Counted from the stretch's first letter, positions 34,067-63,770 are shown. The stretch is DNA of 64,000 nt from Basidiobolus meristosporus CBS 931.73 (GCA_002104905.1 MCFE01000279.1:39986-103985); one strand, 5' to 3'. Program-made: numbers and translations. The notes: generated by a model not told the origin, from the sequence alone.

Positions 34067-37000
34067 CTTGGGTATACTAACCCGCACCCTCCCTTCTTTC
34101 GATAGCTGTCACACGCAAATGACTCCAGGGTCATTGAGAAATCTTCAGTATCAAGCATGGTTTGCGAACTTATATTCATCAGGATATAAGGAGTTAATTC
34201 ATTCGATAGGGTTTTGCTTCTATTAGAGTTTTGTAGTTTCGCTCTTTGTTACTGCGGGAATAAATCAACATGTAAGCTAATTTTGTGGCATGTTTGAACG
34301 AATGCTTACTAACTTGACTGAACATGTAGGAAGCAGGCTTCCTGTCTCTCTCTTCCTCCCTGCCCACAACGAACTACTGTTGATTTGCGCTACTCATGCG
34401 AAGTCAAACACGTTCATGGGAAACGGATGGACTTTACAAAGGATAATTTGAAAGTTGGGAACCCTCTCAAACCCTACAACTACAGCGCAACACAACTTTA
34501 AAAGAGTATAACTCTGTCGTTTTCTGGAAAACAATCTCGTACCAAAAGCTACTGTTGAGTTACCCACCAGAGGTCAACCTTGACCACCGTGTCCATGCGC
34601 AGAATCCTCCAAATAAAGAAACCCTTATTGTAATGGAGATTCCCATTGACTCGATCATCATATAGAACAAAATAGATTTATCGAGTATTGTCTGGAGATG
34701 AGATGAGACATCGCTCCAAAAATATTATCAGTTTTAGGATTGGAAATCTTCATATTGGCTCAAGCTTCATCAAATTCCACATGACAATTGGTTGATTCAG
34801 CACCATAAAAAGGGCGGATTGTCTGAGCATTTTTTATACAACAGTACTATTACTAAGCTAAACAAGTAGTAATGTTGTACACTTTTAATTGAGCAGTCTA
34901 TATATCGCTTCATAACCGAAGAAAATTCCATATATGACTAAGCAGGCTGCTTACCCATTCTATATCGAAATTAGTGGTCATGTTAATGAATGGTGAACAG
35001 CTCACAAAGTCATGATTTACATATTCATACCTGATGTAATCTGTTGCTGTTTATGGGTGATACTCACCATGGCTGTTGGTCCGTTTCTTTAGTAGAATCA
35101 AGTGACTACAATACCTGTATTATTATCCAAGTCTCAATACACCTCTGATTCGTCACTCACATTAGGTTGCTGGTCAGGATATAGAACAGGTGTTTCGGAT
35201 CAGTGAGTGGTGGGTCAAATAAAGCCTTCAGTAATGTTACAAAAATGCAATACACAACGGACGGCCACAAAACAAGCAAGTGCATGTTGTATGACATGCG
35301 CAGAAATACGTCAATGGTGGCACTAAGCTCCTCATGTTTGTGTGAATCGATGGCTGCGATGAGCTATCCCTGAACTGAAGGAGACCTCGGGCACTTGTGA
35401 CGCTGTCAGCATATTTTCCTCCAGTCACCCATGAACATGATCCAATAGACGGTCATGCATCCGTCCCGTAGCATCCTCAGATTTAACATGGAGTTGACTA
35501 TTGGGAATCTTGTGATGAATAAGCTTGTTTTGCAATATCACATTTCTTCATAAATTATTGGTACTCAACCTACTTGATCTAGTTTCCCTCATCATCTGGT
35601 CAACTTAATCAAGATCACAATCTGTACTCAAAACCTGTTTCTTACTTAACCGGCGACAGAGATAGGTGCCACGAAATCATATCATTCCTTTATTTTCTAT
35701 AGATGGAGTGACAGTGGATAATTCGGTATTGGTCGATTTGGGTTATTGGATTTTCTGTCAAATAGGAATAACTGTGGTTCGTTGGGAATTCGGTAATTTT
35801 TCGGTAAGGGACGCCCATTTGATGTTGGCCTTTTAGAAGCTCAGATTTCATGGATACACACATGTATCATCATGCGTACTTATCTTTTCGATGGTGCATG
35901 AGCAACAGAAGTCATTTTAGAATGTAACCATCGCCCCTATTTGGAGATTCAGCGCTGATGTACAAGGCAGCGCTGTATCAGCTAAGATCTTTGCCAAGGG
36001 ATTACTAAATATTACATGCCTACAAAAACTGGCTTTGTTGTTGCTATGCGATAATGCCACCAATGTTTTAGAAGTGCTAATAGAAATCGTTCGTCACTTC
36101 CGCCGCACTGCTGCTCCGCTCACCAATTAGCCAAGCATTGCACAACGACTGCTGTGACCTGCAACAACGTTGGCGCTTTGGAAAGTGTGTGTCTGTGGCT
36201 ACCTGGACACATATGATTAATGAGGACATGTGTGACCGGAAAGAACCGTTCTAGATTTTTTCGCGTCCACGTTGGATTGCTACGTCAACTTCGGGCACGT
36301 CACCCCAATTGGTATTTTTTTGAATCGAGTCGTAAGGTACCTCGTCTGGTCATACCCACTTTAGGGATAGCGTAAATCTATGTTACTTCGCTCTGGATCA
36401 ATATGCCACTTTAATTTCTTGAATTCGATGGTTGACATTTGGTTGAGATTTATTATAAGCCATTTGTGCGACTTGAAATTTGATTTCTTGGTCACAGTAG
36501 GGAATACTCACCCTATCCAGGGGAATGAAGGTTCTAGGCATTTTGAGGCTATGCGGGCTTAGCGTCAGAGGAGTTCTCAAGTTGGGATAATTATCGAATA
36601 TGCGAGCAAAGTCTGATTAGGTTATTTAACGGGTACCCTACTAATCTGCTCACAATACCTGCTTATTAATGCGCAGCAAAAATCAATTCAACCGTAGATT
36701 GCGTTTCAGATTCATTTCAGGCAATGAAAATGCGTCCTTGAGTTATGTAATAGGCCATTCGCCGAAGATCGAGCTCCGCTGGCCAGCTAGCTGCTCTGAA
36801 TAGACCCATGATTCCTAGGTGTCAGCCTGGGAAGTGGCCAATGGTGCGTTCGGAAGCTTGAGATTTCAGGAATCACTTGTGTCTCAATAGGCTGAACAGG
36901 CACGGCTATACGAATCATGTATGCGCTATTGTGGACAGCGACAGGTATCCTCACCAATTAAGTGCTACCCGATAAATCGTGTCGGAAGCACAAGATAGTG

Positions 37001-39353
37001 TAGCAATCAAATCTATCTTCTATCTGGTTTTCCAATATCAGCTTGAGGTAACTAAACACACTGGTCCAAGATCCTATTATAAATACAAATCAGCATTCTT
37101 AGCAGCGTCACTCCAGCCATTTTTCAGAGGATCGCAGGCCAGAGAATACACACATTCATATACGTGCATATACCAATTAGTACTCAGCATGGGCTACCTC
37201 ATTCTACTCAGTATCAAATTGGTATTTTTACGCTCACGCTATATTAAGTTGAGGCGAGGAATCGCTCTTTATTGGGATAATCCGGCTTGATGAGTTCGAG
37301 TCATATTCTTGTCATGTGTAAGCACGGTGTGCTAGTGTCCAACCATTGATTTTGGGCCAATTTCACTTTGGGTAGAAAAATACGGTTGAAAAAAACAATC
37401 TCCAATCATCTTGACTATCGGTAAAATCATGGACTGTGTGACCAAACGCCCGTTCTTGTTTGATTATATCTCAATTGTCTTGGCAATCATTCCAAGACGA
37501 TATCGCAGCAAACAAGTGATGAGGTCTGATCTGCTGGCGGGTGCCGTCCAACAATGATCTCGTTGCTAGATGATTTTTCTTTGAGCATCAGATGATTGCA
37601 TTATCCGATGATCACTATTCGTCGCCGGCGCCGTTTGACCCTTTCCATCCTCTAAGAGCGCTGCGTCGAAACCCCCTAGATATGAATCGCATACTCATGA
37701 CCATTCTCTATGGCAATCCAATGGTCATGGGTTAAAAAGTCATTTATCCATGTCTGAGTCAACACCCATTTGATATGATGACCTTCAATGCTGGTTTCTA
37801 AGCGAAACCCATGCTGCTGGTTGCATATTCATGTGGTTTGCATGATCCAGCGTTGACGGCTCTAGCCTCCCTGGAGCATCCCGTTCTTCCATGCTGGCCG
37901 GTGTACATAGCTGTAGGCGCCATGCCAATGCAGGGGCTTCTTTGCCAAAGCTTCAGAAAATCGAGGACGACGGTGCGTCGCAATTCCGGATATCGATATG
38001 CTTCAGCAACACCCTGAACCAGCACACAGCCCCAACCTTCTCCATGACAGGTGCGTCTGAAGCAGACATCATATCTCTCTTACCGCACTGGTACATCGAT
38101 TCGGAGGGTTGACGTGATCATTTAATAACTGTTTGCATAAAAACAGTGGCCTAACAAAACCTGAGAAATATGTATTAACCTGCTAGTCAAATGAGCTTCT
38201 GCCTAATGGGAGAAATTTGAAACCATACATCCACAATCAGCCTAACATGACAGCACATACCTGGCTTCTGCTCATGTCGCTATTAGGTAAGCAGTGCCTC
38301 GGTGGCCAAAGGGTTGGAGCAGGGCGTTCATTTGGTATCCGGAGACGCTGGATCTACTGCGTAGCTTCTGATGGAAGAAATGCCGCTCGACTTCCCGTAG
38401 TGTGATTGCTTGCACAATGGTGAATTATGTGCTACGATTTGGGCAACACAAAATACTGGAATCAATAATGCCATATAGACAACTGTCAGCCACAACAGGA
38501 TATGATGCCTATTCTCTAAATTGAGGGTGATTTTAGTTTTGGTTAGGTTTGAAATGAGCTGGATCCCTAGTGTTCTTGGTGATTTCTTATGAAACAATGA
38601 AATCTGTGCATGCCATAGTTTTTTAATGGAATACTAGTTAATACTTAATAATACGGGGATCAACGATGTCTGGGATTCTCTTCTATCCCATTCATGAGGT
38701 TTTGGAGGATTTCAGGCACCGCGCTAGCAACAGTATTGGGCTGGAAATGGCGGGGGTCTCATGTCGGTGTTCATATCACAGACATCCCGCGGAAGCCTCG
38801 TAGCGAGCGGTTTGTTTGTTCAAAGAGCAAGAGTCATTTCAATCAGTAACGGGATCCATCCACGGTGACCCAATAGAATAGGGTCGAGTATTCTGATTCC
38901 AAATTCAGTCAAGGGGATACCAATCGTACATGATGAAAAAGCGAAGAAAAAAGAAGTCACCCAATAAATGATTTGAGCGCATTAGGGCTATGAATTGAAA
39001 TATTATTATATATTCCACGGTACCCAATCGGCAGCCAAACTGGCCACTGTGATAACATATAAATGGGTCGGAGAGGGAGCGCGATCTCTATTTCATCCAA
39101 TTGCCCCTTCTCTTGCTATTCTAATCCTAGTGCCTTGAATTCTTCCACCACGAAGCTCTCTAAGCGTCCACCCCACCCTTACACTTCTACATCGGCTGGC
39201 CTAGCATAATATCAGAATCTCACCTCGACTGTGTGGAGATTATAAGATCTTGATCATACTATCATAGAGTAGGAATCACTCAATTGCTTCTTGACTTTGG
39301 GTCTGGATAAATTGGCCGAGAAATATTGATGCTAATATTTTGAAAGATATCCG

Positions 39354-40544
39354 ATGTCTTCATCTTCATCCATGATCGGACGCCCCCGAAAGCCAATATG
39401 GGATCATTTTTGGCGAGGAGAAAGGTGCAATAAAAGCCACTATCATGCTCACTGCAATTATTGTATCAAGGCTTTGGGAATAGGTCGAGTACCTGGTATC
39501 CTTGGCATCCCTCGGACAATGGCGGCACATTTGCGTACATGCCAATATACCCATGCCGATGTAAAGAGAGCATTCCCAAACGAGGTATGTCTTTGTCCAC
39601 CGAGCCCTGTCTTCGTTTCCTCGCATCACTAAAGGCCGTTCATCGTTGGGAATCCTAACCGAAGCAGCAAGGTTAGTTTTTGAGGCGATTTCCAGGAATA
39701 CTTGGGAAGATTTTCCGTTTTACTCCATCAATTTTCTTAGCCGACGACAGGCCTTCCGAGCACAAGCAGCGTAGAATATCAGGGCCACAACTCACATCGA
39801 TATCGGGACTCACTTCGCCCACGTCCAGTCTTGACATTAGCGCTGAGCAGATCAAAAAACTGATAGATATGGCCATAGAGGGTAAGTTGCTTCCTTTTCC
39901 ACCTGGGTCAGGCAATAGTATTCATCCCCACGTTCCTCAAAGCCCTGGATAATTCTTACGCACCCTACACAAACTTCAAAGTCGGCGCCGCATTGCTGAC
40001 CGGCGGGAACCATTTCTATAAAGGTAGCCTAAGCAACAGAACGTCGTTGAAGCAATCGCACCTTGCTTATAAATTATTCTAAGGTTGTAATATTGAGAAT
40101 GCATCTTTAGGAGCTGGGATATGTGCAGAGAGGGCAGCATTCGCTAGAGCATGGGTAATATGCTGAACTAAACCACGTCGTTACCATTGGACTTCGCTAA
40201 CACAACTGCTATGGATTACAGACCGATGGGGAGAAAAAGTTCCTCGCTGTTGCTATAGCCACGTAAGATGTAAAGAAAAATATACGATTGCTATTGGTTT
40301 GGAGACTAACTAGCCCTTAACAGCGATCCCCCAAGCTTTACATTCCCATGCGGCACCTGCAGGTAAGACGAGTGCGGCCGACCTAACCTGTGTTTCGGTT
40401 TAACCAATACAGCCATATCTTTGTAGACAGTTCATGGCGGAATGGGGGACTGATCTCAACGTGTATGCCGTCAAGTCCCACAAATCCACTCAGGTGCTCT
40501 CTCTTGAGGAGCTTCTACCTCATCGTTTTACGCATCATCCATGA
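39354..40544 (+). CDS. CDD1: BED-type zinc finger fused to a CDD1/CDA-family cytidine deaminase (8 exons including a 4- or 7-nt microexon)
   Basis: Exon 1 (39354-39584): IWDHF..CNYC..HLRTC. Microexon ending 39671. Exons 39741-39881, 39943-40023, 40084-40154, 40222-40262, 40324-40362 and 40427-40544 give SYAPYTNFKVGAALL, GCNIENAS, ICAER, PCGTCRQ and LEELLP. The deaminase call is near-certain; the fusion depends on the microexon. Confidence 0.85.
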
Positions 40545-42534
40545 CAAGCTCTCGACTATAGAAGCCATCCTTTTATCGATCGTTTTTCAGCCTCATTGCA
40601 AGAAAATAGAATAGTGAATACTTTGGTAGAGCAGATGTTTATTAGCTTAGAATTGTTGATAAGAACTTAATCTTTATATAATTTTTACATTGTAACAAAA
40701 TATTCATTTCCAACGATGATATTTTGATGTAATCATTTTGTCATCTTCTTACTCCTTCCTGTTCGAATAAATTAGAAAGTGAAGTTAAAAATATAGATAT
40801 CAGCTGCAAAACAACTGAGCAATGGGATCTACATGGCGCTCACTGATCAGCTAGGGCTGTACATGTATGGAGGTTGGCTGTTCAGACTGGTAAATTCTGT
40901 CCCAAACCAAGGGCAATATATTGAATTTTCCGATGTCAACCCCTATGTATGTAATAGCTCAGTCGTTGGCTGTCTAAGCGTTCTTCAGGGATATCTTAGA
41001 CTCAGATGAATTGGCCACTGCATATGTAAAGCTAACAGCTCAGTAACTGTGGAATCCAATTTAGAATCCCTGCAACCATGGACCTCAGTCATGTAGTTTT
41101 TAGATTCAGCAAAAGAAAAGTATCACATTCCCCAAGTTCCCAATATACTATGCAAAGTCAAGTAAGAAGAAGGAAGAGTCATCACTCTGGCAAGGTGTGC
41201 CCCGCACTTTGGTCACCTGCAGGTAAGCATTCCCCCCTTTCATGACTGCAGAAACTAGCTGGCAGCGTTCATCCATTTCCCCACGCATCCTCAGTATTCT
41301 ACATGGTGGTACTGTTGAGGGAACTTACCAAGATAATATATTCGTAGCTGTCTAGTTGATAGATTTCCCAGGAGTATTTAGCTCCTGCTTGCCTCCGATC
41401 AGCTTTTCGTAGCAAGTACAATAAGTGAACTATATTTCATCAGAGGACATCATCATTGTGAATTTCTGCAGGCATCGTTAGAAAATACAAGACTGCCAAT
41501 ATTCAGCATACGGGTGACTTTGTTCTCTGATATTTTGGAGTTTACGGTACGGCGAAACATGAATGATCTTGGAATTTAGTGTATCCTTCGAATATGATCA
41601 ATTTCAATACTAAGCTACTCTACTGATCTCCAATCCATATATACATGTATATACATATATATATTGGCCATAATTGTCTTCACACTAGTGGGCTCATCTG
41701 CTGGCTCTATTGCATGGCGAGTTCCCATCAGATGGGTAAAGTGCTTCCGGAAATGCTTCAGGGCAGTTGTTTTTAGGAATGGTTTCCAGAATCCATCAAA
41801 GGGTCCCCAAACGTTTTGTGCGTGCTTTGGAAGACTTCCGAAACACAACCCCAACCTATTTTCCTCTTACATTGTCCAGGTAATCAGTCAAGTTGGGAAC
41901 GTATCTCGTATGTTCACCCGAATTCCAAAACATGACAAATACCCACAATTTTCTCGCAATGGGCACGAGATCCAAGGGCTTCAGCATGAAGTTGACTTCT
42001 GATGCTCAGCTTAACCAGCAGACTCTGATGGTCCACTATTGTAGAGCCAAGGCCTAGGAGGATTTGTTCCTTGGGAAGCATACCACTACATATTCCGTTT
42101 ACATGCAGTTGATTACGATAACCGGTAGTAATGGCCATGATCCAGAAGATTATTGGTAGCGGCATGAACTTCGTTGTCACAACCAAGGGGCGAATGAAAT
42201 CCTACGGTTGTGTGGATTAGATTACACCAAGACAGGTTTCTAGCTAGTCCTGTACATAAGCGGGATTTTCTTGGATACTGGAGCACCTCATTCGCTGCTG
42301 ATTGGATATCCTGGCGGCAGATATTCCTGTAGGTTTTTTGTACAATTGTCTAAATATTCCCGTGTTTTTATTGAAACAAGGTAACCTTGGAAGGCTTCTA
42401 GAATAATGGTCGAGTTGAAGAATCTAGACTGTAAGATGCTTGTGAACATGTAGCCGCAATGAAGGTGACATATTCTCATTAGTGAAGTATGAATGCTCAT
42501 GAGGGTTCAGGTTAACGACAGCTGTGCGGGTATT

Positions 42535-59906: not shown

Positions 59907-59930
59907 TAGGGTTAGGGTTTAGGGTTAGGG
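59907..59930 (+). repeat. Interstitial telomeric tract starting the retroelement array
   Basis: TAGGGTTAGGGTTTAGGGTTAGGG. Confidence 0.9.
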
Positions 59931-60374
59931 GGAGGAAAGTCACCAAGTAGTGAAATCTTTATTTACTTATGACAAGTATCTAAAGAAGCCAAGTTAATCT
60001 GAAGTTATTCCTAGTTAGCTAGGTCTGAGAGAGGTTTCCTGGAAAGCCAGGCCTGAGAAGTGAGAATCTGAATATATCTGAGCTAAGTTATACTGGTTTG
60101 CGGTAGGTGGATTGTGGCCGGAAAGGCCAGTGGACTGGGGGAACTGAGATGAATTTCTGGGCGATCACTGGCCATATTTACTAGGCAAATCTGGCCATTA
60201 GCATTTCAAGGATTTCAGCCAATCAGAGCCTTTACTTTGCCCAATAGTTGATCAAGCCATCTCCCAATGAGCACACATCAATTTATTAATCAAATTTTTG
60301 CTGGATCCAGGATTTGAACCCACAACCATGGGTATGGAAGGGTTAGGGATAACCACAAGGCTAAGTGTTCTTGG
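59931..60374 (-). mobile_element. Telomere-associated tRNA-derived SINE, copy 1 (444 bp, lacks the 78-bp duplication)
   Basis: Minus-strand A box TAGCCTTGTGG (60363-60353) and B box GGTTCAAATCC (60320-60310), 32 nt apart; 3' tail shared with the LINE; TTAGGG at both ends. Confidence 0.8.
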
Positions 60375-60395
60375 TTAGGGGGGGGGAGGGGGGGG

Positions 60396-61458
60396 GAGAC
60401 AGTCACCAACAGGTGAAATCTTTATTTCAGTTGAAACAAAGAAGCCAGCGCTACTGTTGTAGCTTTGATACAAGAGTGTGTAGCTGAGGGGAATTTGTAG
60501 GTAAGTTAATAAGAAGTGATGATAGTTCTTCAGTGCTCAAGACACTGTTCAGTGGGAAGGGGGGTAGCAAGAGAGGTAAGAATGACTTGTGAACAACATT
60601 AATGAGGGGAATGTGATAAGGATTGATATTCATCATAAAGGGAGTGTGCTGCTGCAGATATTGCTGCCAAAGGTCTGTCAAGTACTTCAGGTAGGCCAGC
60701 TTGGGTTTTTCTGACTGCAGAATATAGTGAGCAAACTTCTTGACTTCAGGATCTCCAAGTATAGTTCTCCAGCAGGAGCCAGGTGTTGCGTGGTGTGTTC
60801 TCTTCCAGGCCTTAATCAGTGGGTTGTTGCAGTTGTGAAGTCTGAGGTATAATCTGGTTCTAAGGTAGAGAAGTCTGATCTTATAGGGCATAAACCCAAA
60901 AGCACCAAGAATAGCATGTCTGTAGGGGCATTCAGGCAAATGAGGCACCAAGGAGGTAATGCACCATACTGCAAACTTGTCAAGCTTAGTGCAGTCTCTA
61001 GAAGTAAGAGAGAGAAGTGGTAAGCCAAATTCCAGGACAGGGAAGACAAACTGCTTGAGTAGAAGGAGGCAGCTGGGAGCTGAAGTTGTAGGAGGAGTAA
61101 CAGCCAGTAGCTTGTGGAGTGCCTGTCTTGCTAGGATAATTCTCTTCTTCAGGTGTGCTCCAGAGTCTAGTCCAGTAGGAAGGAAAGGAAAGCCAAGATA
61201 TGTAGCAGAAACCTGAGCAGGTAGAGTGGAGTTCTCCAAGTTGATGGGAGAGCCCAAAGGTACTGTCTTTGCAATGGAAAGCTGGAGATTATTCTTCTGC
61301 AGATACTGGTGGATGGTCTGGGAGTCTTGTTGCACATTGGAGGAGGATATTCTGATGTCATCAGCAAAGAGAGTAACCAGGCAGTCAGCTGAGAGTCTTG
61401 GGAAATCATTCAGGAAGATGGCAAACAGTATAGGACCAAGCACAGAGCCTTGAACCAC
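60396..61458 (-). mobile_element. 5'-truncated non-LTR (LINE) retrotransposon, family A
   Basis: RT ORF plus short 3' UTR ending in a C-run. The truncation point abuts TTAGGG at 61459. Confidence 0.9.
60451..61458 (-). CDS. C-terminal half of a non-LTR reverse transcriptase (uninterrupted 335 codons, 5'-truncated)
   Basis: QGSVLGPILFAIFLND (domain 4), LFADD (catalytic), LQLSIAKT, ATYLGF and KQFVFPVLEFG. Confidence 0.92.
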   Translation of the reverse strand: MVQGSVLGPILFAIFLNDFPRLSADCLVTLFADDIRISSSNVQQDSQTIHQYLQKNNLQLSIAKTVPLGSPINLENSTLPAQVSATYLGFPFLPTGLDSGAHLKKRIILARQALHKLLAVTPPTTSAPSCLLLLKQFVFPVLEFGLPLLSLTSRDCTKLDKFAVWCITSLVPHLPECPYRHAILGAFGFMPYKIRLLYLRTRLYLRLHNCNNPLIKAWKRTHHATPGSCWRTILGDPEVKKFAHYILQSEKPKLAYLKYLTDLWQQYLQQHTPFMMNINPYHIPLINVVHKSFLPLLLPPFPLNSVLSTEELSSLLINLPTNSPQLHTLVSKLQQ

Positions 61459-61464
61459 TTAGGG

Positions 61465-61986
61465 GGGAGGAAAGTCACCAAGTGGTGAAATCTTTATTTA
61501 CTTATGACAAGTATCTAAAGAAGCCAAGTTAATCTGAAGTAATTCCTAGAAAGCTAGGTCTGAGAGATATCTTCCTGGTAAGCCAGGTCTGAGAGTTGAG
61601 AAGCTGAGTGGTACTATATTTCCTAGTTAGCTAGGTCTGAGAGAGGTTTCCTGGAAAGCCAGGCCTGAGAAGTGAGAATCTGAATATATCTGAGCTAAGT
61701 TATACTGGTTTGCGGTAGCTGAATTGTGGCCGGAATGGCCAGTAGACTGGGGGAACTGAGATGAATTTCTGGGCGATCACTGGCCAAATTTACTAGGCAA
61801 ATCTGGCCAATTAGCATTTCAAGGATTTCAGCCAATCAGAACCTTTACTTTGCCCGATGGTTGATCAAGCCATCTCCCAATGAGCACACATCAATTTATT
61901 AATCAAATTTTGCTGGATCCAGGATTTGAACCCACAACCATGGGTATGGAAGGGTTAGGGATAACCACAAGGCTAAGTGTTCTTGG
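61465..61986 (-). mobile_element. Telomere-associated SINE, copy 2 (522 bp)
   Basis: Near-identical to copies 3 and 4; same head and tail as copy 1; distal end capped by TTAGGG. Confidence 0.85.
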
Positions 61987-62029
61987 TTAGGGTGTAGGTG
62001 TTATAGTAAGGGCTAGGAAAAGGTTAGGG

Positions 62030-62465
62030 GGGATGATCATCACCAAAGGGTGAAATCTTTATTTAAATAATCAATAAAGAAGCCAAGTTTGAATATGAAT
62101 ATCTGAGATGCAGGAAGCCTACAAGATAAACTTGGACTTTGCTGTATCCCAAATATCCTCAGTATCAAAGTCTAGAGGAGAGTGCAGCAAGACTGCTTGT
62201 TCACTGTAGTATTTCTTGAGGAAGTTTGTGACTTGAAGGGAAGGAGAGTTTTTCAACAAGCTGGTAAATCTTTTGAGAAGTTCTTTTTCCAGAGAGAATG
62301 GCACAAAGAGTGGAATGTCCAAGTGATGTCTGAATATATGCTCTGAGAGCTCCCAATCCAGCATATTTTTGACTTCTTCTGTAAAATCTTCAACAATATC
62401 TTTGTCAAGAATAACTTCCAAGAGATCCCTGGCAATGTACTGAATGTTAATAATCTTAGGCATAC
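62030..62465 (-). mobile_element. 5'-truncated retroelement fragment, family B (unrecognised ORF C-terminus)
   Basis: Open frame 62119-62463 ending WDTAKSKFIL*; 3' end carries the shared TCACC/GGTGA hairpin; distal end capped by (TTAGGG)3. Confidence 0.7.
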
Positions 62466-62489
62466 TTAGGGTTAGGGTTAGGGTAGGGG

Positions 62490-62752
62490 AGGGAAAGTCA
62501 CCAAGGTAGGTGAAATCTTTATTTGATTTCAGACAAGTCTAACTACTAATAAAGAAGCCAGCTGGGAATAAAAGATTCCCAAAGTAAACACTAAGTTGAA
62601 TATGAATAAATCTAAGCTAAAGTTAAGGCAGTATCCCAGAGTACACTGGAGTTCAGGTTCATGGGGGAGTGAAGTAGATAAGCTTGAGAGATATAATAAT
62701 CTTTAAGGAAGTGGGTAACAGCAGGTGAAGGGGAGTTTTTGATAAGTGAGGG
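62490..62752 (-). mobile_element. Shorter 5'-truncated fragment, family B' (paralog of B)
   Basis: Minus strand translates SLIKNSPSPAVTHFLKDYYISQAYLLHSPMNLNSSVLWDTA, homologous to B's SLLKNSPSLQVTNFLKKYYSEQAVLLHSPLDFDTEDIWDTA; shared 3' hairpins. Confidence 0.7.
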
Positions 62753-62759
62753 GTTAGGG

Positions 62760-63280
62760 GGAGGAAAGTCACCAAGTGGTGAAATCTTTATTTACTTATG
62801 ACGAGTATCTAAAGAAGCCAAGTTAATCTGAAGTTATTCCTAGAAAGCTAGGTCTGAGAGATATCTTCCTGGTAAGCCAGGTCTGAGAGTTGAGAAGCTG
62901 AGTGGTACTATATTTCCTAGTTAGCTAGGTCTGAGAGAGGTTTCCTGGAAAGCCAGGCCTGAGAAGTGAGAATCTGAATATATCTGAGCTAAGTTATACT
63001 GGTTTGCGGTAGCTGAATTGTGGCCGGAATGGCCAGTAGACTGGGGGAACTGAGATGAATTTCTGGGCGATCACTGGCCAAATTTACTAGGCAAATCTGG
63101 CCAATTAGCATTTCAAGGATTTCAGCCAATCAGAGCCTTTACTTTGCCCAATGGTTGATCAAGCCATCTCCCAATGAGCACACATCAATTTATTAATCAA
63201 ATTTTGTTGGATCCAGGATTTGAACCCACAACCATGGGTATGGAAGGGTTAGGGATAACCACAAGGCTAGGTGTTCTTGG
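62760..63280 (-). mobile_element. Telomere-associated SINE, copy 3
   Basis: Near-identical to 61465-61986. Confidence 0.85.
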
Positions 63281-63307
63281 TTAGGGGGGGGAGGGGGTTA
63301 GGGTAGG

Positions 63308-63770
63308 GGAGGAAAGTCACCAAGTGGTGAAATCTTTATTTACTTATGACAAGTATCTAAAGAAGCCAAGTTAATCTGAAGTTATTCCTAGAAAGCTAGG
63401 TCTGAGAGATATCTTCCTGGTAAGCCAGGTCTGAGAGTTGAGAAGCTGAGTGGTACTATATTTCCTAGTTAGCTAGGTCTGAGAGAGGTTTCCTGGAAAG
63501 CCAGGCCTGAGAAGTGAGAATCTAAATATATCTGAGCTAAGTTATACTGGTTTGCGGTAGCTGAATTGTGGCCGGAATGGCCAGTAGACTGGGGGAACTG
63601 AGATGAATATCTGGGCAATCACTGGCCAAATTTACTAGGCAAATCTGGCCAATTAGCATTTCAAGGATTTCAGCCAATCAGAGCCTTTACTTTGCCCGAT
63701 GGATGATCAAGCCATCTCCCAATGAGCACACATCAATTTATTAATCAAATTTTAGTTGGATCCAGGATTT
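63308..63770 (-). mobile_element. Telomere-associated SINE, copy 4, 5'-truncated inside the B box
   Basis: Matches copies 2 and 3 until GGATCCAGGATTT, then switches to GGGTTAGGG. Confidence 0.85.

Follow-up and report, generated by a model that had tools for sequence, protein, structure and literature searches.

A Basidiobolus gene that most likely joins a BED-type zinc finger to a cytidine deaminase through a seven-nucleotide micro-exon

We analysed a 64,000-nucleotide (nt) stretch of the Basidiobolus meristosporus CBS 931.73 genome (GCA_002104905.1 MCFE01000279.1:39986-103985; referred to here as the window, with positions counted from its first letter). A gene on its plus strand, at 39354-40544, most likely joins a BED-type zinc finger to a complete cytidine deaminase (CDA) of the ordinary type by way of a micro-exon of 7 nt (or 4 nt). 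When spliced, the interval yields a single intact open reading frame (ORF) of 242 amino acids from eight exons, or of 241 amino acids with the 4-nt form of the micro-exon. The product begins with a GRP motif and the BED-type finger, continues through a Ser/Thr-rich basic linker of about 35 residues, and ends with a CDA of the homotetramer type. At the DNA level this gene model is strongly supported, being backed by a comparison of four BED-CDA loci, namely the two paralogs each of B. meristosporus and B. ranarum, and the BED-CDA combination is a real, lineage-restricted new domain architecture. We consider it probable, with some reserve, that the joint reading holds: the fusion is made through the micro-exon, derives from a duplicated native CDA, and encodes a nucleoside deaminase placed or regulated by its fingers and not a polynucleotide editor. 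The original prediction of a single BED-CDA gene stands as far as the four-locus comparison and an identical public model of the ortholog (P0047) can carry it; it does not extend to the RNA level for the window copy.

The reading frame of the fusion depends on the micro-exon. Direct splicing of exon 1 to the exon starting at 39741 would be out of frame, because exon 1 ends in phase 0 and the downstream exon needs one base more. The frame is restored by the micro-exon in the context aAG/CAGCAAG/GTTAGT (39665-39671), with a CTAAC branch site immediately upstream. That a micro-exon brings finger and deaminase into frame had been proposed from the window by itself, and it restores the frame in all four loci. 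Since the acceptor in B. meristosporus is a tandem AAG/CAG, a 4-nt micro-exon (39668-39671) would be possible there and equally in frame, while B. ranarum is restricted to the 7-nt form because both of its copies have CAA in place of CAG. The 7-nt micro-exon therefore appears to be the conserved form, with both lengths possible for B. meristosporus. Other in-frame joins, from a GTCTTT donor at 39589 or to a gaag acceptor at 39709/39710, were considered and rejected as having weak signals that are not conserved in the other three loci. We take the ATG at 39354 to be the true start, since the spacing from the upstream AG to this ATG differs among the loci by non-multiples of three.

All exon boundaries coincide across the four loci, and every locus gives an intact ORF of 239-247 amino acids from the same eight exons. 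Our model of one B. ranarum locus (L002) equals the public model P0047 (239 amino acids) letter for letter. Collinearity of its locus with the window across 36.9-40.8 kb makes P0047 the ortholog of the window gene; P0048, also of B. ranarum, is the ortholog of the B. meristosporus paralog. In public contigs both copies recur, in the source genome as well as in a third organism that is closer. Relative to the window, the other three loci have their exon-2 acceptor 3 nt further downstream. Exon 1 and exon 2 vary in length among the four only by multiples of three, and the linker-containing exon measures 141, 138, 135 and 138 nt, all multiples of 3. Synonymous sites among the four loci are saturated (synonymous divergence, dS, at least 0.9), against a nonsynonymous divergence (dN) of 0.065-0.096 in the finger exon, 0.045-0.13 in the deaminase and 0.07-0.34 in the linker; for the ortholog pair, dN is 0.07-0.09 against saturated dS. 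At the level of sequence, the comparison shows a single ORF that is under purifying selection in all its parts.

The micro-exon itself is one of only two conserved intronic islands in the four-locus alignment, in which the introns are otherwise unalignable (four-way identity 0.54-0.66 in exons and 0.11-0.19 in introns). This first island (39661-39679) contains a 16-nt stretch, [A/T]AG/CA(G/A)CAAG/GTTAGT, that corresponds exactly to the micro-exon with its acceptor and its GTTAGT donor, and at the intron background identity of 0.16 it would arise with P of about 3e-7. The sole variable position in its coding part is CAG/CAA, which is synonymous for Gln, and the P0047 protein reads ...NE-QQ-DD... 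at this point. In intron 1a only the branch site and the acceptor can be aligned among the four loci. The basic patch KQRR noted in the linker at the outset is present and recurs as K[QH]RRI[SN], within a motif K[QH]RRI[SN]xP...SISG[FL] that is conserved across the four loci.

In the spliced product the zinc site reads C167-A-E169-R and P199-C-G-T-C203-R-Q, which bears out, in joined exons, the complete CDA-type deaminase with intact C-A-E and PCGxC that had been predicted. For profile and full-length model results we used the ortholog P0047 as a proxy, single window exons being too short to score. P0047 scores 61.5 bits on PF00383 (dCMP_cyt_deam_1) against a cut-off of 25, and the public model of the window gene, P0107, carries both PF00383 and PF08211. 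Among solved structures human CDA is nearest (1MQ0, E=6e-35), and yeast Cdd1 (1R5T) matches at E=1e-20. A comparison then covered every column with at least 80% conservation among 116 canonical CDAs (the full set without P0108); the four fused CDAs keep every zinc ligand, catalytic and nucleoside-contact residue. The nucleoside-binding and site-closing residues kept are F138 (before V-G-A-A), N156 and E158 (of C-N-x-E-N), C-A-E-R, P-C-G-x-C-R-Q and the Phe of the C-terminal LLPxxF. Common to the four fused domains are K175R, S178T, E179D and F210W, all conservative changes. The short C-terminal tail (4 residues after LLPHRF) was considered as the sign of an opened active site and rejected, as tails no longer than 4 residues occur in 19 of 117 ordinary CDAs.

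Over its whole length the catalytic domain aligns with the homotetrameric CDAs of human (1MQ0), yeast (Cdd1, 1R5T) and Bacillus subtilis (1JTK), with which it shares the zinc site, the nucleoside contacts and LLPxxF. It differs from them in having about 110 extra N-terminal residues, made up of the finger and a disordered linker and contributed by a separate exon and the micro-exon, and in that, at three of the four fused loci, helix α1 lacks its own start codon. That the small CDA domain tolerates partners is also seen among the search matches in bacterial fusions with YbeY, a phosphopentomutase-type metalloenzyme, diacylglycerol kinase and HAD. In those proteins, however, the CDA is combined with enzymes of RNA or nucleotide metabolism and never with a nucleic-acid-binding zinc finger, and no such fusion among the matches is eukaryotic.

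The four fused domains group together in a maximum-likelihood tree (100/99). Their sister is the unfused B. ranarum CDA (99/95), and their clade lies inside the fungal CDAs, with a long stem branch of 0.59. An unfused CDA of 142 amino acids is found in both species, as P0108 in B. ranarum and, on checking the genome from which the window is taken, as P0232 in B. meristosporus. Its gene has four intron positions in common with the fused genes, its own ATG, and no finger nearby. Because both species keep this enzyme, the fused genes are extra copies and not the salvage enzyme itself. The more conservative of the original proposals, a salvage enzyme that had captured a regulatory or localisation domain, needs amending in this respect. 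The reconstructed history is that a native CDA was duplicated, lost its start codon and captured the finger exon together with the micro-exon, and that a second duplication followed before B. meristosporus and B. ranarum split.

The finger carries its ligands and aromatic residues as W16-x2-F19, C34-x2-C37 and H59-x3-C63, as expected for the BED-like finger (W-x2-F, C-x2-C, H-x3-C) predicted in exon 1. Across an alignment of 33 relatives, W16, F19, C34, C37 and H59 never vary, and at least 90% have C63. The only Pfam family that the finger matches, below the cut-off, is zf-BED (PF02892); among the relatives, 12 of the 33 match zf-BED at E<=0.01 with no other family matched, and P0017 reaches 35 bits, above the cut-off. 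Separate AlphaFold models were made of the finger and of the full-length ortholog. The finger model has a predicted local distance difference test (pLDDT) value of 79, and its best fold matches are the BED domains of ZBED1 (2CT5), ZBED2 (2DJR), ZBED3, RICESLEEPER, DAYSLEEPER and the Ac transposase, with template modelling (TM) scores of 0.4-0.55 and E values that are all 0.3 or higher. On its signature and family context, we accept the finger as BED-type.

A search with the finger exon among 1.84 billion representative proteins gave one close cluster, P0001, which is the paralog in the same genome (87% identity over the finger); all others were at 48% or less. The nearest relatives outside Basidiobolus are not fungal. 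They are the N-terminal fingers of oomycete proteins of 800-1000 amino acids, at 41-47% identity, from Phytophthora, Bremia, Pythium, Lagenidium and Aphanomyces (P0002-P0016, P0019, P0023), named 'BED-type domain-containing' in UniProt. One 361-amino-acid member of the Phytophthora cluster bears the name 'Endonuclease V' in its source, without support from Pfam. Two of the oomycete relatives weakly match DUF659 (E = 0.018 and 0.035), a hAT-associated domain, and these matches are only a hint that the finger may have come from a transposase. The finger shares the W-x2-F and C-x2-C...H-x3-C signature with the BED fingers of hAT, ZBED, DREF and SLEEPER proteins; unlike in those proteins, a metabolic enzyme follows the finger in Basidiobolus, and the Pfam score is below the cut-off. 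No transposase, hATC or other domain was found after the finger, only the CDA, and elsewhere in the window there was no second BED or CDA copy and no transposase similarity. A hAT transposase or a domesticated hAT gene was accordingly rejected as an identity for this gene, there being no RNase-H-like region or hATC behind the finger but the CDA alone.

Several observations weigh against the reading of the window gene as a finger-bearing nucleoside deaminase. The public annotation, P0107 ('cytidine deaminase [B. meristosporus]'), is a CDA of 120 amino acids without a finger. The finger scores 15.6 bits on zf-BED against a cut-off of 20.6 (E=0.017), below the gathering threshold, and its fold matches are non-significant at the E values given above. 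The window copy has a tip branch of 0.25, compared with 0.009-0.087 in its three relatives, and alone carries S136T and I202T, at positions that are 95-100% conserved in CDAs. A polynucleotide substrate would be compatible with the CDA fold, because yeast Cdd1, a tetrameric CDA, is reported to edit both RNA and single-stranded DNA (PMC5699538, which cites Dance 2001 and Xie 2004). The RNA-like evidence also points the other way. No run listed for this gene was labelled as RNA; a search for runs of any kind gave six, labelled 'DNA?', and the four of them examined yielded a single RNA-like contig over the gene. We infer that the run concerned (X3) derives from complementary DNA, because this contig lacks exactly the 61-nt GT..AG intron 39882-39942. 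The contig is 329 nt long, identical to the window, and spans 39577-39966; it is unbroken over 39577-39880 and spliced only at 39882-39942. It thereby retains both micro-exon introns (39585-39740), and it begins at 39577 without extending into the finger exon. For the window copy, the BED-to-CDA splice rests on comparison and not on RNA, and is in that sense unproven.

If the contig represented the typical transcript, then the window copy would make two products. Its transcripts would keep the micro-exon introns or start near 39577, giving a BED-only peptide of 92 amino acids, a CDA of 120 amino acids, or both, and the fusion frame would be a relic or be used only in the other copies. In an intron-retaining mRNA the finger ORF would stop at 39630-39632, which gives the 92-residue peptide, and translation of the deaminase would have to begin at the Met of 39869-39871, where P0107 starts. 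This is the sole in-frame ATG of its exon, and the Met occurs at this position in the window copy only, being replaced by Leu in the other three loci. The retained introns and start point of the contig, the 120-residue public model, this Met and the long branch of the window copy all speak for two products, which we nevertheless regard as unlikely. A start at Met 39869 leaves 9 residues before the conserved Tyr, shorter than in any of 117 canonical CDAs (minimum 15, median 17). The residues upstream of it (SAEQIKKLID) align with helix α1 of human CDA 1MQ0 and with the unfused Basidiobolus CDA at its N-terminus. In the ortholog, as modelled by AlphaFold, helix α1 comprises residues 112-126, and 9 of these 15 precede the equivalent of the internal Met and would be missing. 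It had been predicted that the deaminase frame has no Met before its first helix, and indeed the only in-frame ATG lies inside helix α1. A 23-codon upstream ORF (39587-39658) would also stand ahead of this Met in an intron-retaining mRNA. Furthermore, the micro-exon, splice signals and frame are intact in the window copy and identical to those of the paralog, linker length changes remain in frame, and there is no conserved internal promoter: the four-locus alignment holds no block between the finger exon and the CDA exons comparable to the one at 38812-39064 upstream of the gene. Incomplete processing of a pre-mRNA, a regulated isoform with retained introns or an internal start may each account for the contig, and a single short contig from a single run is not enough to demonstrate absence of the spliced form.

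Judged from these alignments, the public 120-residue model, which is contained in our 242-residue model, is truncated. Two of the other public models also depart from the shared gene structure. That of the B. meristosporus paralog (P0001, 340 amino acids; L001 4001-5198) reads through an intron and uses a 25-nt 'intron', and that of the second B. ranarum copy (P0048, 192 amino acids; L003 4001-5046) starts at a Met inside the finger, with a full finger exon and its own ATG lying upstream. The deaminases of the two fused B. ranarum genes can be translated only from the ATG of the finger, because neither gene has a Met in the stretch from the finger to the deaminase core.

A different possibility concerns the substrate. 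A BED-targeted enzyme might deaminate cytosine or 5-methylcytosine (5mC) in DNA (or RNA), as a mutator, editor or repeat-inactivating activity arisen independently of AID/APOBEC; we hold this to be decidedly unlikely. Very unlikely in our estimation is the specific form in which the fingers would bring a CDA-derived tetramer to specific DNA and cytosine or 5mC of the polymer would be deaminated, making a DNA-directed deaminase out of a salvage enzyme without descent from AID/APOBEC, in an early-diverging fungus with repeats nearly free of CpG. The combination of a DNA-binding-type finger with a deaminase is compatible with such an activity, as are the existence of the fused genes in addition to an unfused CDA, the long stem branch after duplication with its four clade-wide changes, the reported editing by yeast Cdd1 and the extreme CpG depletion of repeats in the window. 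On the other hand, the protein retains every residue for free-nucleoside binding and for closure of the site across subunits, the changes specific to the clade are conservative, and the C-terminal tail is within the ordinary CDA range. With AID/APOBEC the protein has in common a zinc-dependent deaminase fold and the idea of a nucleic-acid-directed deaminase. It differs in that AID/APOBEC enzymes use H-x-E and are not obligate CDA-type tetramers, whereas the window protein has C-A-E and groups with nucleoside CDAs. Membership of the AID/APOBEC type was rejected on these grounds, the first zinc ligand being Cys instead of His and the nearest relatives nucleoside CDAs, so that the two are related at the superfamily level only. 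Nothing in the sequence points to a polynucleotide substrate.

The composition of the repeats in the window had suggested a mutator. The heavy CpG loss described for them is present, with an observed/expected CpG ratio of 0.06 at 1-20 kb and 0.10 at 59.9-63.8 kb (59907-63770) and an excess of TG/CA, compared with 0.73-0.85 in the genic part at 20-59 kb. CpG depletion is the usual footprint of 5mC methylation, and we know of no CpG preference in CDA. Since the depletion is the usual signature of cytosine methylation, which accounts for a loss specific to CpG, it is no evidence for the enzyme encoded in the window. The proposed link between this enzyme and CpG loss is accordingly not retained, for the protein keeps all invariant nucleoside-CDA residues, including the ribose-binding N-x-E and the C-terminal Phe, has C-A-E and not H-x-E, and nests within the fungal CDAs.

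The least probable alternative is that the window copy is decaying towards a pseudogene under constraint relaxed after the second duplication, with the paralog carrying the function, as its long tip branch, its unique S136T and I202T, and its derived finger-tail residues G44, H67 and P75, unlike those of all three relatives, might suggest; but its ORF, all 14 splice sites, micro-exon, zinc ligands and catalytic residues are intact, the ortholog pair has low dN against saturated dS, the upstream block is conserved, and transcription and splicing are seen for at least a part of the gene.

We return to the fused nucleoside deaminase. In tetrameric CDAs the active sites are closed by neighbouring subunits. 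By analogy, the CDA core of the fusion protein would form a tetramer with its active sites closed across subunits, and would still deaminate free nucleosides of the (deoxy)cytidine type. Modelled by AlphaFold in the ortholog, the linker has pLDDT values below 50. Such a tetramer would display four flexibly linked N-terminal fingers, which could bind DNA with avidity. The predicted fingers might place the enzyme on DNA or chromatin or in the nucleus, or might regulate it. From the architecture, a tethered deaminase is a reasonable inference. The fused pair is likely specialised and not engaged in bulk salvage, because the unfused CDA has been retained.

The exons, introns and conserved elements of the gene are listed in Table 1. 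The introns between the six CDA-side exons are all GT..AG introns of 60-67 nt. The second intronic island lies in one of these: the intron that follows exon 40222-40262 begins with 15-19 nt that are identical in the four loci in spite of saturated synonymous sites. The unfused CDA gene has an intron at the equivalent position without the GTAAGATGTAAAGAA island. Retention of the intron from 40263 onward would truncate the protein before the PCGxC motif, because an in-frame TAA follows the donor, and the island may be a splicing-regulatory element. Upstream of the gene, a motif TATT(G/A)ATGCT(A/T)AT...GAAAG (window 39325-39353) is conserved in the four loci and ends 3-12 nt before the ATG. It is non-coding, since between loci its distance to the ATG differs by non-multiples of 3; it resembles a branch site with acceptor and may belong to an intron in the 5' untranslated region. 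Further upstream, three non-coding-looking segments (36928-37046, 37399-37494 and 38401-38477) are 72-83% conserved with the B. ranarum ortholog locus. Rfam gave no match in 38500-41000.

Table 1. Positions in the window of the exons, the first introns and the conserved non-coding elements of the BED-CDA gene.
Feature	Position	Strand	Remarks
Promoter-like block (GTTTGTTTGTTC)	38812..39064	+	CCAAT boxes at 38870, 38961 and 39024; TATAAAT at 39058-39064; conserved in four loci
Coding exon 1: start ATG, GRP motif, BED-type finger	39354..39584	+	77 codons; ends in phase 0; GTATGT donor at 39585
Intron 1a, GTATGT...CTAAC...AAG, 80 nt	39585..39664	+	ends 39667 with CAG acceptor
Micro-exon CAGCAAG, 7 nt, Gln-Gln and 1 base	39665..39671	+	alternative 4-nt form 39668-39671
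Intron 1b, GTTAGT...TTCTTAG, 69 nt	39672..39740	+	
Exon: Ser/Thr-rich basic linker (KQRRISGP, SISG) and CDA helix α1	39741..39881	+	holds internal ATG 39869-39871
CDA exon (SYAPYTNFKVGAALL...)	39943..40023	+	
CDA exon, C-N-x-E-N and catalytic C-A-E-R	40084..40154	+	
CDA exon (TDGEKKFLAVAIAT)	40222..40262	+	
Second intronic island: conserved intron start (GTAAGATGTAAAGAA)	40263..40281	+	in-frame TAA directly after donor
CDA exon, P-C-G-T-C zinc motif	40324..40362	+	
Last CDA exon, RQFMAEWG...ELLPHRF... and TGA stop	40427..40544	+	

In protein searches, including the one over 1.84 billion representative proteins, the BED-CDA architecture was found only in Basidiobolus, and in a literature search neither a connection between BED fingers and cytidine deaminases nor a Basidiobolus CDA came up in any paper. 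The pairing of a BED finger with a CDA is undescribed. The comparison of the four loci corrects the public annotation of the window gene (truncated), of its paralog (intron read-through) and of one B. ranarum copy (start inside the finger), and it shows cleanly how conservation by itself can reveal a micro-exon of 7 nt. Provided that the fusion protein is made, a DNA-binding-type zinc finger and a small cytidine deaminase of the nucleoside type would be naturally paired in it. This raises the question of whether a salvage-type deaminase has been recruited to chromatin for local control of the nucleoside pool, or has been converted to act on nucleic acid.

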